64,000 nt of DNA, from the sequence record KX397373.1; one strand, written 5' to 3'. The notes under the pieces were generated by a model. It had not been told where the DNA came from and ran no database searches. It saw nothing but the letters and a program-made list of their open reading frames with translations. The translations under genes were made by a program, and so were the position numbers. Shown piece after piece: positions 58,777 through 64,000 of the stretch. Within the stretch, counting starts at the first letter, position 1; the number at the start of each line of letters is the position of its first letter.

Positions 58777-60151
58777 ATTTCTGTAATGAGCGAATCAGGA
58801 AATACAACAGCAACGCATTACGCAATGCAGCAAGCGCAGACTCGTGACGGATGTGAGTTTCCTTGGCAGCCAGTTTCTCAATCCGGGTACGCAACGACAA
58901 CACGTACGGGTTCGGGGATTTTGATGCCTGGTACAGGGAACGCATCCGCAGCAGTACCGTGCCTGCATCGTTGAAGTTCAAGCGACTGCTCACGACTTCG
59001 TCAAATGCATGGGACAGGGTGTCTTCCATGATGCTGTTAATCTCATCACGCTTCTTACCCAGGGGCAGTCCGGCGATGTAACTCAGCAGCTGCTTGAGGG
59101 CCGCAGGCGATGCCTTCGGAACCATCTCCAGCACCACGCGAGCCAACTCTTCCTTGTACAGGTTGTTGATGTCGTAAGAGGCATCGAACAGGTTCTGCTT
59201 GGCAATGTCCAGGGCACCGACTTTGTCACGGATAATGGATTCACCGTCCAACTCAATACGAGAGGACTGAATCACCATGCGGCTGTTTTCCCGACGTACC
59301 CGGTCTAACACGGCGTAGTAGTCTTTCACGGTCTGTTTGGTACGAGTGTTCAAGTCCGTGATAAACCGCAGCACCAAGTCCGGGGTGTCGTAGCGCTTGA
59401 CCGCATCGTAGTTCGGGTAGTCTGGTGAGCAGAAATACTCCGCACGCTCCTGCATGTGCAAGCCCCAGTTGCCCAGACGACGAATGTCAAACTTTAACGA
59501 CAGCATCGAGTAGGTCACCTCGGCCGCATTCATATCCACCGGTTTCGGGAAGAAGTGGTAGTAGATACTCGAGTAGAATTTGAACTGGAGAATCACCACC
59601 AGATCAACCGCCGCATTACGAATCTCTTTGTCGCTGAATTTCGGGAACATCAAATGCAGCAGATAAGTAATGGTCAGGTTGAAGGTGTCCCCGGCCACGT
59701 TCCAGTCGGTGTTGATGGCTTCGGCTTCTTTGATAAGCTCGGCCAAGAAGTCTTCGTCGACTTTCAACACTTCTTCGAACAGGCGGTTACGGTCGGAGTC
59801 GTAAAAACGAATCTGGTGCACGCCCAACAGGTTCGACCCACGCCACTCGACGTTGCCGTCACGGCCCAGAATCGATGCAACGTACATCCGCATCCGCTGC
59901 GCCATCTTACGGTCAATCACCACGCCCTTAAAGGCGTTGTCAAACGCTTTACGCAAGCGGTCATTCTTAAGGGCTTCGGTGGCAACCACCATCCCCATCG
60001 GAACATATCCGCCAAACCCGTAATCGTAGTACAATCCGGTGGCGAAAGAACCGTCGTCAAAGAAGGGGTCACGACCGTGTCTTTCACGGGCAACTTTTAC
60101 CTCGGGACTCGCGTAAAGTCCTGATGCAAAATCATAAACTAGATCGGACAT
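58775..60151 (-). CDS. Putative virion protein
   Basis: AGAGG RBS before ATG 60151 (track start 60376 overshoots); N-terminal ATE could be a protease site. Confidence 0.55.
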   Translation of the reverse strand: MSDLVYDFASGLYASPEVKVARERHGRDPFFDDGSFATGLYYDYGFGGYVPMGMVVATEALKNDRLRKAFDNAFKGVVIDRKMAQRMRMYVASILGRDGNVEWRGSNLLGVHQIRFYDSDRNRLFEEVLKVDEDFLAELIKEAEAINTDWNVAGDTFNLTITYLLHLMFPKFSDKEIRNAAVDLVVILQFKFYSSIYYHFFPKPVDMNAAEVTYSMLSLKFDIRRLGNWGLHMQERAEYFCSPDYPNYDAVKRYDTPDLVLRFITDLNTRTKQTVKDYYAVLDRVRRENSRMVIQSSRIELDGESIIRDKVGALDIAKQNLFDASYDINNLYKEELARVVLEMVPKASPAALKQLLSYIAGLPLGKKRDEINSIMEDTLSHAFDEVVSSRLNFNDAGTVLLRMRSLYQASKSPNPYVLSLRTRIEKLAAKETHIRHESALAALRNALLLYFLIRSLQK

Positions 60152-60164
60152 GGCATGAACCTCT

Positions 60165-60189
60165 AAAAAATTACGGATAGATATTATCC
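60165..60189 (+). promoter_or_regulatory. Putative phage early promoter (A-tract then ATAGATATTATC)
   Basis: Third copy of the recurring intergenic motif. Confidence 0.55.
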
Positions 60190-60224
60190 TTTTGATAGTA
60201 GTATACCTAAAGGAGATTTTTCCC

Positions 60225-61358
60225 ATGAAGAAATATGAACGCAAAGCAACGTGGCACAAAGCGCTACGTTCCGGTACGATATCAAAAGACCAGGATGTAA
60301 AGATGTGGGTATTGCCACACGGGGTTATCTGTGAGTTAGCCCGTGTTGGGGGTATGCCGATTCTACGCAACGGCAACTATGACGCCGTCAATTCTTTCCT
60401 GGCGAAAACACTGTCTGATGCGGGCATTGAAAACGAGGTGCTGTTTTATACCACCCGTGTTATCCCGCAGACGTTATCGCGTTGGCTTACACACTGGTTG
60501 TCGACAGACCCCGGTGAAAACGATCCAGAGCTGAGTTCCGTTACCGTTACCACAATGGGACAATATCCGCAGAAACCTTTACCCTTTCAGGTTAACGTGG
60601 TGGAGCCAGTTCTGGTGAAAGCAGGGGCTGTGTTTGAGAACATCAAACAGAAATCCCGTAATAACGCCGTCTCTCAATTTATCGTTGAGGCGAACGGTGT
60701 GCAATACCGACTAGAACCGGTGCGTAACACCACCGGGAAAATCATTGACTGCACAGAGTACGGCTACGTGGTCCGCACACCCACAGGTCACACTTTCCTG
60801 GCAACTATGATCTCTCGTCGCATCCAGTCGCAGCTAAAACATTACAATGTGCGGCCGGACGATCTTATCGGTACCGAAGTTAAGATCGAATATACGATGT
60901 TTACCGAAGGGACTCGACTGTGCAACTTCAAGTCTTCGATAATTTATCGAAGCATTGCCCTGGATAACATGGGCGACTCTTACCCTGCCACATACGATGG
61001 CCCGAACCTCTTTAAGCAATTACCAGGCGGTAGCAATCCAGCGCTCTTGACTGTAACGCGTTGCGGCCGTGCGGATATTGCGCTAAGAGAAGGGACAATT
61101 TATGGCATTGAGCGGGAGTCCGGTGAGACCCTCTTTAGATTTGAACCTGGCGTATCGCATGGTTTGTATGCGGCGCAGTTCGAACACAAAGGGGTGACCG
61201 AAACCTGGCGTTTCGTATCTGAGTTTGCTGTGGATGTTATAGACCCGACCGCATTCGTGGAGAGTGTGGCTACCCAAATCTTTGGGGCAACGGGCTATAG
61301 TCTACAAAGGCTTGGACTGTGTTACGCTGAAACCGAACCACAGTCAATGGAAACTTAA
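60225..61358 (+). CDS. Hypothetical protein, possible degenerate ATP-dependent DNA ligase fold
   Basis: AAGGAG RBS; OB-fold-like segment LIGTEVKIEYTMFTEGTRL; no KxDG motif. Confidence 0.5.
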   Translation: MKKYERKATWHKALRSGTISKDQDVKMWVLPHGVICELARVGGMPILRNGNYDAVNSFLAKTLSDAGIENEVLFYTTRVIPQTLSRWLTHWLSTDPGENDPELSSVTVTTMGQYPQKPLPFQVNVVEPVLVKAGAVFENIKQKSRNNAVSQFIVEANGVQYRLEPVRNTTGKIIDCTEYGYVVRTPTGHTFLATMISRRIQSQLKHYNVRPDDLIGTEVKIEYTMFTEGTRLCNFKSSIIYRSIALDNMGDSYPATYDGPNLFKQLPGGSNPALLTVTRCGRADIALREGTIYGIERESGETLFRFEPGVSHGLYAAQFEHKGVTETWRFVSEFAVDVIDPTAFVESVATQIFGATGYSLQRLGLCYAETEPQSMET

Positions 61359-61368
61359 GGAGCACCCT

Positions 61369-61878
61369 ATGTTTACTGCGCCAACCATGCTCTCTGGTAG
61401 CAGCCTGCGAGTAGCGTGCCAAGATGCACGCCTCATGGAACTCTGCGATCAGAGCATACTTACTGCGATGATGACCCACAACCCTTTAGGTGACTACGGA
61501 AATACCAGCGAGATATTGGCCGTTGCTGCCGTGCTCCGTCGTATTTACGGTCATTTCACAATCGTGGATCTGTGTGACTTTATTGACAACCATACCGATT
61601 TAGCGAAAGGGTTGGTGGCGTTAACACAAGACGGTGTATCAAGCTTTGATAGCGGCATCGGCAACTTTTTGGATATTGGCTCGGGCTTTGACTCGGGGAT
61701 GATGTTTATCACCCGTGAACGCTATGTGGCCGTTTGGGAATTCATGGCGAAGATGGGCGTGAACGTGCCGTCTAAGATCATGTACTACCCGACTCACGAT
61801 TTGAATATCTTCGGTGAGCCAGGACTCTGGGTAAAACCCGTGCACCTGGGACTTGACGGACTGACCGTCAAGTGTTAA
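61369..61878 (+). CDS. Hypothetical protein
   Basis: AAGGAG RBS before ATG 61369. Confidence 0.7.
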   Translation: MFTAPTMLSGSSLRVACQDARLMELCDQSILTAMMTHNPLGDYGNTSEILAVAAVLRRIYGHFTIVDLCDFIDNHTDLAKGLVALTQDGVSSFDSGIGNFLDIGSGFDSGMMFITRERYVAVWEFMAKMGVNVPSKIMYYPTHDLNIFGEPGLWVKPVHLGLDGLTVKC

Positions 61879-61888
61879 GTATCCAACG

Positions 61889-61926
61889 CGCACTCTCTTC
61901 GGGGGGTGCGCAACACTTTTTTATTT
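61889..61926 (+). terminator. Intrinsic terminator
   Basis: CGCACTCTC-TTCG-GGGGGTGCG followed by a T-rich tail. Confidence 0.75.
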
Positions 61927-61943
61927 CCTAAAGGATAACGAGT

Positions 61944-62492
61944 ATGTTCCAATTGTTTAAAGACGTGTTCTCCCTGACCTCGACCCCGCACATCTCCCTG
62001 GCAGAGAACTGGCAGGAGGACATCGCCAACCAAATGCGTGACCTGGTACGTACTGACCGCATGGAGAATCGTTACGTGGTGTGGTACAAGGACGACAAGC
62101 CGTATTTCATCTTTGTGGTCGCGCCTGCCGAGGATCGCCATTACCTCTACGTCAAAGAGCACCTCAGTGACGAAATCGTCAACGGGCTACGCGGTGCATT
62201 AAGCGAAGAGGGGGATGTGAGCAAATACATCCTGTGCAGCGATTTAAGGACACCAATCGAATTAGCGGCGGCAACGTTCCAGGGAGTGGCTATCGACATC
62301 CCAGGGAGCGTTACAGACGACGTAATCGTGCAATTCATCGGAAGCGCCGGGGAGGAGGTTGTCCGTCATCGGAAAACGCTGGCCCCTGGTCTGTCACCGG
62401 TGTTGTTCCTGTCGGGTAATTTCACTGTCGAGGACATTGCCGAACTTGAACAAGCGGGTTTCAAGTTGGGTAATCTTCTGTACAAATTTTAA
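61944..62492 (+). CDS. Hypothetical protein
   Basis: 182 aa, AAGGA RBS. Confidence 0.75.
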   Translation: MFQLFKDVFSLTSTPHISLAENWQEDIANQMRDLVRTDRMENRYVVWYKDDKPYFIFVVAPAEDRHYLYVKEHLSDEIVNGLRGALSEEGDVSKYILCSDLRTPIELAAATFQGVAIDIPGSVTDDVIVQFIGSAGEEVVRHRKTLAPGLSPVLFLSGNFTVEDIAELEQAGFKLGNLLYKF

Positions 62493-62498
62493 CCAATT

Positions 62499-62528
62499 GG
62501 GTGCCTTCGGGTGCCCTTTTATTTTTTT
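62499..62528 (+). terminator. Intrinsic terminator
   Basis: GGGTGCC-TTCG-GGTGCCC followed by a T-rich tail. Confidence 0.85.
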
Positions 62529-62536
62529 GCCCTGCT

Positions 62537-62571
62537 CACTTTTTAACCAATGTTTGTACACTTTTTAACCA
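62537..62571 (+). repeat. 13-bp direct repeat CACTTTTTAACCA, two copies, 22-bp period
   Basis: Copies at 62537-62549 and 62559-62571; partial TTTTAACCAA at 62487. Confidence 0.8.
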
Positions 62572-62771
62572 GCGCCAAAAAGCCCCCTGAAAAGCTCTCT
62601 GAGGAGATTTACTCTGACCCGGTACGTTTGGGTGCCTGCCCCCCTTTCGTCGCCGTGACGTGGCTTACAGGACGCGTGCGCCCCATCCCCGGTTCGCCGA
62701 GCCGACCGCCGCGACGATCAAAATATCATGTACGCTTCGCGTTGGAATGGATTGGGAGACTGGATCGATTT

Positions 62772-63107
62772 GTAATTCGCATCTCTGCGAATTACCTTCG
62801 AGTGCTTTTCCTGGCTTACTGCCTATCCGGCCCTTAAGGCCGGGATTATTTAAAAATTTCCTTTTTAAATTAGTGACTTACGTCACTCACTGATTTCAGG
62901 TTTTGATCTTCGTCGGATCTCTTTCATTATACGCGCGTACGCGCACACCCGTATCCTCCAGGATCTTTTAATATATATTTATTATTAATATTATTAATAT
63001 CTTTAGATATTATTAAATATATTAAAATATATTAATATCTTTAGATATATTTAAAAGATCTTAAAACGCGTGGGTGTGCGCGTGATCCTTATTACGAGAT
63101 CGTGATC
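62772..63107. other. Origin-like element: palindrome series, ~94% AT core, inverted repeats, GATC cluster
   Basis: 62966-63066 has 6 G/C in 101 nt; flanked by ACGCGCACACCC/GGGTGTGCGCGT and GATCTTTTAA/TTAAAAGATC inverted repeats; 19-bp direct repeat inside. Confidence 0.55.
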
Positions 63108-63159
63108 GGGGGGAGGGGAGGAATTATTTTTTACAAGACTTCCCAGTAGTGTGACAAGT

Positions 63160-64000
63160 TGACCCCGATGGCATTACGGGAAAGCCACTCTCGACCGAGG
63201 ATGAGTCTCAGTGTAGCGTGTGTGCGAAATGGGAGTGGCGCTTTTTCAACGAACGAATCTTACAGGCTGGTAGGATGGAAGGGGAAACCTAGCGACCCTC
63301 AGAGTCGCAAACTGCTGTGTGTTGGCTCCGCCCCTGGGGTAAAACCTCGGGGCGATTTTTTTTCTCCCGAAATCGAATTACGAGTTTGTTTAGTTATATG
63401 CGAATAGTTTCCTCGAACGTCACTGCTTGGGGATAGCTGATTTTCTGCGGATGCAGAGCTCCACCCTGGTCTTCACCAGCCAGGGTGCTTTTTCGAGAAT
63501 TCCTATCGTGGGAGCCCTCGAGAAAGCAAATCGCTCAGCCTAACACTGTTGGTTTGTTTAGTATGTTCGGCAAAAAGTGTTTCGCGACACTTCGAACGGG
63601 TGGTTCCGAGCGGGGAAACTTTGAACCACCCACCCATTCAGGTATCGGCTTTTTGCAATCGGCCTTTGGTCGTGATGCATGACGCTTTCACCGTCACACA
63701 TGTGCCGGTACCGTGGCAGCTCCAGATGCGGGACTTCGAGTATACGCCGTTGAACTTACCTCCGGTAGTCCTCGTCGTTCCCGCCCTGGGGTGCGGCCAA
63801 TCCGAATTCGGCGTTGCGTCGATAGGGGTCTGCGTGTAGAACCGCAGGCTTGGGGTTACTCCCGAAGGAGAGTGGTCCATATCTTGGCGGCTCGGGAAGA
63901 CGAGAGGGGTGGATGTCCTCGTTGGGAAACGACGATGTCTGGCTGAATAAAATTTACAGGTTAGCCGTTGGGTATGTTAAACAACCCACGGAGAACTGCA
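63160..64000 (+). ncRNA. Candidate structured non-coding RNA region, family unidentified, runs to the window edge
   Basis: No RBS-supported ORF; more than 10 stems, several with G-U pairs or GAAA-type loops; TTAGTATG motif at 63558. Confidence 0.4.

Follow-up and report, generated by a model that had tools for sequence, protein, structure and literature searches.

What occupies the last 1.5 kilobases (kb) of the 64,000-nucleotide (nt) stretch of record KX397373.1 analyzed here (the window, numbered from its first letter), where inspection from ~62500 to 64000 revealed no convincing frame? By blastn, positions 62500–64000 match the final 1.5 kb of the Erwinia phage vB_EamM_Stratton record at 100% identity, with window position 64000 corresponding to base 243953 of KX397373.1. 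Stratton is an Erwinia jumbo phage of the genus Erskinevirus and a relative of SPN3US. An initial annotation, made before any database search, had suggested that an undescribed, late-expressed jumbo-phage non-coding RNA starts here at a motif, TTAGTATG, which indeed reads at 63558–63565. The suggestion of an undescribed RNA is supported by covariation on the + strand, the lack of a conserved frame, the lack of a match in Rfam 15, and the lack of any mention in the literature searched. We propose that 63565–63945 (+) is the gene for this structured RNA, which would be made by the non-virion RNA polymerase from the TATG start, and we put the probability that it is a genuine functional structured RNA of a new family at about 0.93.

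Covariation and strand

The predicted fold of 63565–64000 on the + strand (-172 kcal/mol) is more stable than those of dinucleotide-shuffled copies (-156.7 ± 6.2 kcal/mol; z = -2.5, with 1 of 100 as good). The - strand reaches z = -1.9, so stability by itself is modest support. As judged from the aligned sequences, the case for a structured RNA is instead carried by covariation across relatives. Helices were drawn by eye on 18 non-redundant copies of the 3′ half (alignment A1) and turned into a covariance model (R1), to which 23 copies were realigned (A2); the 5′ domain was aligned separately (A3), and 500 shuffles and slid-partner controls were run. In A2, pairing holds in 91% of cells, and both sides have changed at 22 of the 36 pairs, compared with 12.9 ± 1.6 in shuffles (0/500 as good) and 2–7 in slid-partner controls; because A2 was fitted to R1 and the sequences fall into about five clades, the counts here and below overstate the number of independent events. 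Paired changes also exceed the shuffles in the 5′ domain (12 of 21 pairs in A3 versus 5.9 ± 1.4, 0/500; slid controls 1–4), and two further hairpins at the 5′ end, found only in Erskinevirus and Seoulvirus, have compensation at 7 of 20 pairs in an alignment fold. At least eight helices are kept by compensatory changes, beyond what column composition and relatedness account for. Frequent G·U pairs, such as those in 14 of 22 rows at one pair of helix H9, assign the RNA to the + strand, because read from the opposite strand they would become C·A.

Architecture of the RNA

The RNA measures ~381 nt in Stratton and ~290–360 nt in relatives. Its architecture would comprise a variable 5′ part, a branched domain (P2, P3, an AACUUAC hairpin, H4, and H5), and a 3′ module. 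The module is the most conserved portion, consisting of a half-masked complement of the 16S rRNA tail, a 29-nt block, a GNRA hairpin, and a terminal GCUG. The features in Stratton coordinates are as follows.

63539–63547 (+): conserved CCTAACACT box, ~20 nt 5′ of TATG in the alignments
63552–63565 (+): late-promoter-like motif TTTGTTTAGTATG, with the proposed start at G 63565
63565–63631 (+): two 5′ hairpins (63565–97 and 63598–631), in Erskinevirus and Seoulvirus versions only; helix 1 opens at the G of TATG
63632–63644 (+): conserved unpaired box CACCCAUUCAGGUA, with a UUCAGGU core in all genera
63645–63710 (+): variable linker hairpins, differing in length and sequence by clade and nearly absent in Caitlin-type phages
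63711–63798 (+): 5′ branched domain, covarying in A3
63715–17 / 63796–98 (+): P2, GGC/GCC, alternating with GGU/ACC
63719–25 / 63786–92 (+): P3, its letters rewritten in Caitlin-type phages and Wellingtonvirus
63747–65 (+): inner-arm hairpin with an invariant 7-nt loop, AACUUAC (63753–59)
63711–14 / 63887–90 (+): tentative long-range pairing, CCGU/GCGG
63808–12 / 63818–22 (+): H4, within 63804–63849
63828–34 / 63843–49 (+): H5, covarying, loop UGUAGAAC
63852–55 (+): G-run 5′ of H6
63859–62 / 63867–70 (+): H6, CUCC/GGAG, 4 pairs changed on both sides
63866–78 (+): 12–13-nt complement of the 16S rRNA 3′ tail (predicted duplex)
63874–83 (+): mini-hairpin H7
63881–63909 (+): 29-nt near-invariant block ending in AGGGG, in A1 and A2 and all four genera
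63891–94 / 63901–04 (+): possible hairpin H8, CUCG/CGAG, inside the invariant block, with no variation by which to judge pairing
63910–41 (+): H9, 13 base pairs (bp) with one internal mismatch and a GNRA loop (63924–27), 10 of 13 pairs changed on both sides
63942–45 (+): invariant GCUG, the 3′ limit of conservation
63949–57 (+): AAAATTTAC, resembling the phiKZ middle-promoter box, outside the conserved RNA
63965–91 (+): gp1 leader hairpin, outside the conserved RNA
63990–93 (+): gp1 ribosome-binding site GGAG, outside the conserved RNA
Record bases 1–510, just past the window: gp1 (PHROG 1040, HslV-family peptidase), whose ATG is the first record base

Every stem read by the initial annotation is present, among them GTTCG 63565–69 / CGAAC 63593–97 with the inner AAGTGT/ACACTT, GGGTGGTTC 63598–606 / GAACCACCC 63623–31, GTCGTG/CATGAC (in the letters), CTGCG/CGCAG at 63830–34 / 63843–47, CTCG/CGAG at 63891–94 / 63901–04, and the GNRA-capped CGTTG…CGACG hairpin, which sits in the longer 13-bp hairpin 63910–63941. 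Others needed correction. TGCC/GGCA can form in Stratton but shows no conservation and is in competition with the GGC/GCC helix, which covaries, while ACTC/GAGT exists but the supported register is CUCC/GGAG. The CCG.TGGGT/ACCCA.CGG hairpin (63965–91) is real but belongs to the gp1 leader, past the promoter-like AAAATTTAC. Rather than running to the window edge, as had been supposed, the conserved RNA stops at 63945 with the invariant GCUG.

Helix H5 has been rebuilt with other letters in three clades (GUCUGCG, CCCAGCG, and GUACACGG). The 29-nt block departs from invariance at one variable base and by a 1-nt insertion in the SPN3US group. Changes in the long-range pairing CCGU/GCGG are confined to one side, which leaves it unproven. 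Upstream of the RNA, the CCTAACACT box is retained even by Huxley-type phages lacking TATG, and may be a promoter-proximal element or the 3′ part of an upstream small RNA.

Comparison with known RNA families

Searches of Rfam 15 with cmscan returned noise only, whether for window 60000–64000 at E ≤ 1, for five divergent homologues at E ≤ 5, or for 63560–63960 alone at E ≤ 10 with ribozyme models included; the matches scored 13–27 bits versus gathering scores of 39–140. The families covered included SRP, group I and II introns, small ribozymes, riboswitches, GOLLD, ROOL, and HEARO. ARAGORN found no tRNA or tmRNA inside the element. Both programs agree with the initial annotation, which had seen no tRNA, tmRNA, RNase P, 6S, hammerhead, or intron signature. 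Papers on SPN3US, phiEaH2, and jumbo phages that we searched do not mention the RNA. Without a match in Rfam or the searched literature, the RNA is previously undescribed.

Candidate motifs were also compared by eye with known consensus features. For the hammerhead, CUGA is present with no GA after it. Hepatitis delta virus (HDV)-like ribozymes, RNase P CR-I, group II domain V, signal recognition particle domain IV, and the 11-nt tetraloop receptor did not fit, and only ACGAGAGG is shared with the sarcin-ricin loop.

These comparisons bear on whether the invariant block and H9 form a ribozyme core, or a ribonuclease site, at which the late transcript is split from the gp1/tRNA operon. Catalytic or tightly bound cores typically have this appearance, with a long invariant junction set among covarying helices and a GNRA hairpin; the element adjoins a tRNA cluster that needs processing, and the 3′ module is intact even where the gene is split in phage Kwan (see below). 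However, no Rfam ribozyme model matched at E ≤ 10, and the hammerhead, HDV-like, RNase P, and group II domain-V consensuses were unmet by eye, leaving a self-processing or processing-guide RNA quite improbable.

Coding potential and annotated frames

In pairwise comparisons, nearly every insertion or deletion is not a multiple of 3 and mismatches have no codon phase, which indicates that the region is not coding. The small frames annotated here differ among Stratton, phiEaH2, and Asesino, with Stratton gp288 covering window 63549–63839. Hypothetical-protein calls over 63549–63839, over the equivalents of 63175–63360, and in phiEaH2 and Asesino overlap covarying helices. These annotations are most likely artefacts.

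A short frame opening at UUG 63884 was considered as a gene in its 20-codon form and rejected, as neither its length nor its frame is conserved: it ranges from 13 to 53 codons and is shifted in the SPN3US group. Within its invariant part, differences are only non-synonymous or frameshifting. The variability and the lack of synonymous changes point to constraint on the RNA and not on a peptide.

A coding explanation (gp288-like frames or the UUG frame) could draw on the hypothetical proteins in the records and on the 20-codon form, which ends at an invariant UGA in 14 of 21 homologues. The annotated frames nonetheless differ among near-identical genomes, and neither indels nor substitutions follow codon phase. 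Similarly, an element acting as DNA only, such as a promoter or a homing-endonuclease target, would suit an invariant block that abuts an endonuclease insertion point, yet paired columns changing together, with G·U on one strand only, is not the pattern of a DNA element. We regard both possibilities as remote.

Distribution among jumbo phages

Sensitive blastn found the element in 61–63 phage records belonging to Erskinevirus (Stratton, phiEaH2, Asesino), Seoulvirus (SPN3US, many Salmonella, E. coli, and Proteus phages, SPAsTU, pEa_SNUABM_29), Machinavirus (Huxley, Machina, Caitlin, ChrisDB, and others), and Wellingtonvirus (Kwan, Wellington, pEa_SNUABM_11). Scanning for the invariant motif brought in further contigs of ~240 kb from IMG/VR and metagenomes, with 9 true jumbo-phage matches and 7 chance matches. 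The same scan of 185,579 prokaryote species genomes gave 2 chance matches and nothing real. Model R1 matched exactly once in the 243-kb phiEaH2 genome and had no match in phiKZ, Cronobacter phage CR5, or Erwinia phage Ea35-70. On this sampling, the RNA appears to be specific to SPN3US-like jumbo phages of these four genera.

Over a 2.6-kb stretch compared between Stratton and SPN3US, the nucleotide matches are non-coding blocks plus tRNA-Trp. The blocks comprise a palindrome (62921–63109), two short promoter-proximal boxes, and the core (63710–64027). The core is ~78% identical between the two phages and the gp1 proteins 42% identical; the RNA core is thus better conserved than neighbouring proteins.

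Proposed transcription start and 3′ boundary

Late promoters of phiKZ consist of TATG, with the G as +1, and transcription by the non-virion polymerase depends on this motif (PMC4666361). In the phages studied here, conservation of TTTGTTTAGTATG-TTC spans -14 to +4 across Erskinevirus, Seoulvirus, and Caitlin-type Machinavirus. Two other copies of TTAGTATG in the window lie 30–40 nt 5′ of gene starts. The conserved TATG context, the first covarying helix opening at its G, and the phiKZ precedent fit the start that the initial annotation had placed at the motif, and by analogy G 63565 is the putative transcription start.

The 3′ boundary takes two forms. In many phages (Stratton, SPN3US, Caitlin, Kwan, and others), GCUG is followed by a T-rich TTTAC box, ~35–45 nt, and a ribosome-binding site. 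The box resembles the phiKZ middle-promoter element AAanTTACc (PMC4666361). Other phages have a ribosome-binding site and ATG directly after GCUG. U-runs 3′ of H9 stand 5–20 nt off the stem, so H9 does not form an intrinsic terminator.

Downstream frames and a split allele

Which frame comes after the RNA depends on the phage. It may be open reading frame (ORF) X, which is the Huxley gp279 family, an unrelated frame of 191 amino acids, a SPAsTU-type frame weakly similar to ORF X, or gp1. The Huxley gp279 family (125–245 amino acids, PHROG 20200; at 1694–2074 of the Huxley stretch) directly follows the RNA in Machinavirus and Wellingtonvirus and is absent from Stratton and SPN3US. In Proteus phage 7 and phage 1252, the unrelated 191-amino-acid frame lies where ORF X otherwise sits. 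Homologues of gp1 are found 3′ of the RNA in Seoulvirus, Erskinevirus, and Machinavirus, directly or past one to two small frames, and tRNA-Trp comes next after them. A variable downstream frame argues against a gene-specific riboswitch, and fits a free-standing RNA or a generic 5′ module; the consistent gene set of a cis-regulatory leader is not found.

The RNA gene is split in Kwan and Wellington by a 615-bp cassette inserted just 5′ of the invariant block (886–1500 of the Kwan stretch), with the 5′ domain still upstream; other Wellingtonviruses are unsplit. Within the cassette, a hairpin and its T-run precede a ribosome-binding site, after which comes a 510-bp frame for a 169-amino-acid HNH endonuclease. 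The hairpin region beside the junction is partly duplicated. An HNH gene within a group I intron was considered and rejected, there being no exon context and no Intron_gpI match, and 615 bp being too small. The size of the insert and its own hairpin and T-run indicate a free-standing endonuclease cassette. Mobile endonucleases usually pick highly conserved DNA, and the insertion shows that the split site is a target of such enzymes.

The 16S tail complement

Positions 63866–78 can pair with the 3′ tail of 16S rRNA, the tail sequence having been checked on E. coli rrsH. In all homologues the predicted duplex (-17 to -25 kcal/mol) occupies one and the same alignment position, and where phages differ by A or G the pairing persists through wobble pairs. 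In the 64-kb window, the site is among the three strongest on the + strand, and it lies ~3 standard deviations past the best site of shuffled copies, a figure that rests on related sequences. A second candidate, a 12-nt complement of 16S 961–972 in H4, is not retained by phages of the Huxley type and does not stand out from the background of matches of this kind.

Free-standing RNA or leader

From these comparisons we lean, by a little, toward a free-standing RNA and not a cis leader. The RNA would act folded, as suggested by the changing next frame and by the separate promoter-like box in many phages. SPN3US-like jumbo phages are nucleus-forming and separate transcription from translation. 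Our best guess at a mechanism, a weakly supported one that is less likely than not, is that the 3′ module engages the translation machinery late in infection, with the 5′ domain setting its accessibility. The partner may be the 30S subunit, contacted by way of the 16S tail, or else a factor that recognizes the invariant block. A broader version is unlikely: an RNA class that would dock on the small subunit through the 16S-tail complement plus the core and gate translation, or whose core would be a self-cleaving ribozyme releasing the tRNA-operon transcript.

The main competitor, which we consider possible though doubtful, is a cis 5′ leader resembling a riboswitch or translational operator. 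The element would then head a message running into ORF X, gp1, or the tRNAs, and its 5′ domain would sense a ligand, a protein, or temperature. The element always lies 20–100 nt 5′ of a same-strand frame, and in Kwan the endonuclease insertion leaves the 3′ module attached to the ORF X homologue. Moreover, phiKZ has many RNA candidates derived from 5′ untranslated regions (PMC10914365). Against a leader, the next frame is not the same gene among phages, a promoter-like TTTAC box intervenes before that frame in a number of phages (Stratton, SPN3US, Caitlin, and Kwan among them), and a ~60-nt invariant block plus hairpin sits where the regulated gene normally starts. In a specific form of this model, which we hold equally doubtful, CUCC/GGAG would mask a very strong Shine-Dalgarno-like site that loads ribosomes at UUG 63884 or serves the next frame as a standby site. 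UUG indeed lies 10–12 nt past the Shine-Dalgarno-like site, and the upstream G-run could pair with CUCC as a competitor in every homologue. However, the UUG frame is the variable one described above, without synonymous changes, and the competitor helix has no covariation.

Several observations count against a free-standing RNA that acts on the ribosome. Huxley-type Machinaviruses have lost the TATG motif and kept the CCTAACACT box and the RNA; there its transcription would have to begin further upstream, in favour of a leader or read-through. In phages of the Huxley, SNUABM9, and SNUABM4 types, ORF X comes immediately after the RNA and no promoter box separates the two; in the Huxley type it opens 21 nt past GCUG. 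A terminator scan placed terminators at 63332–52 and 63462–87 only, with no clear one after H9. Kwan and Wellington are viable although their RNA gene is split, so the intact RNA is dispensable for laboratory growth. As to the ribosome, the 5′ (GGAG) half of the 16S-tail complement is itself paired with CUCC in the covarying H6. A switch helix between the G-run and CUCC, tried as a way to free this half, could form in every homologue but was rejected, since 211 of 500 shuffles scored equally well.

Relation to other phage RNAs

Among the closest parallels to the proposed RNA are GOLLD and ROOL, which are likewise large, frame-free, multi-helix phage RNAs beside tRNA genes whose function is not settled. 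No covariance match links them to the present element, which is shorter (~290–380 nt versus ~580–800 nt), has another helix layout, and is confined to four enterobacterial jumbo-phage genera. In phiKZ, short to medium non-coding RNA candidates derived from 5′ untranslated regions and from elsewhere, conserved within the genus, have been reported from transcript data (PMC10914365; Gerovac 2021, cited there). These come from a related phage type that has RNA polymerases of its own and starts late transcripts at TATG, and they often lie at the 5′ ends of operons. Unlike the element described here, which is known from sequence alone and was recognized by covariation, they mostly have no structure evidence. 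Phage T4 species 1 and 2 (rnaC/rnaD) are stable RNAs of unsettled function in a tRNA cluster, ~120–140 nt long and matured with the tRNAs. The element shares the link to a phage tRNA cluster, but is about three times longer, precedes a protein gene, and begins at a promoter-like start of its own. Translational riboswitches and RNA thermometers also have a multi-helix 5′ domain, a hairpin masking GGAG, and a possible G-run competitor; here, by contrast, no regulated gene comes right after, the downstream gene varies, no known aptamer matches, and the competitor is without covariation.

SPN3US is the genetic model for enterobacterial relatives of phiKZ. Its first kilobase is annotated as empty, and a well-supported, family-specific structured RNA can now be placed there. 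The coordinates, covariance model, and helix map are offered for a tractable system that includes a natural split allele (Kwan, Wellington). If a link to the ribosome or to processing were true, an RNA player would be added to late gene control in jumbo phages. If it were false, this would still be a new large-RNA family, and several spurious hypothetical-protein calls in GenBank should go.

Genomic setting

The element is single-copy and syntenic, with an origin-like AT-rich palindrome and two small terminator-ended units upstream and the gp1/tRNA cluster downstream. Because the Stratton genome is permuted, the window continues at the start of the record; in phiEaH2, which matches window 62500–64000 at 99%, the same DNA is internal (blastn). 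Past gp1, the record start continues with another small frame, tRNA-Trp, and a dozen clustered tRNA genes. The gp1 protein begins MTTIAYDG, and Pfam and PDB sequence searches with it gave no match.

The palindrome at 62917–63111, an AT-rich palindromic core between GC-rich inverted boxes, is conserved at the nucleotide level in all four genera. With such a deeply conserved element ~450 nt away, and with G-rich invariant runs in the RNA, a replication-linked role can be imagined, as a primer or R-loop transcript similar to ColE1 RNA II or the T4 origin transcripts. The transcript heads away from the AT-rich core, though, and two terminator-ended units intervene. Wide covariation and a GNRA hairpin indicate a folded RNA rather than an RNA-DNA hybrid, and this phage group has no mapped origin. 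We therefore consider a replication RNA very improbable.

Between the palindrome and the proposed RNA gene, the unit at 63392–63495 has a second TATG-type start (TTATATG, G 63398), a conserved GC-rich hairpin, and a T5 run (63462–87), and would give a small RNA of ~95 nt. Its terminator stem has different letters, and is still a stem, in SPN3US-, SPAsTU-, and Caitlin-type phages; it is shorter in Huxley-type phages. Further upstream, TTTTTTAC at 63127–34, just past the palindrome, resembles the phiKZ middle-promoter box, and a strong terminator at 63332–52 is followed by a T-run; 63127–63362 is possibly another non-coding unit of ~200 nt. Another terminator-like hairpin lies at 62826–44.

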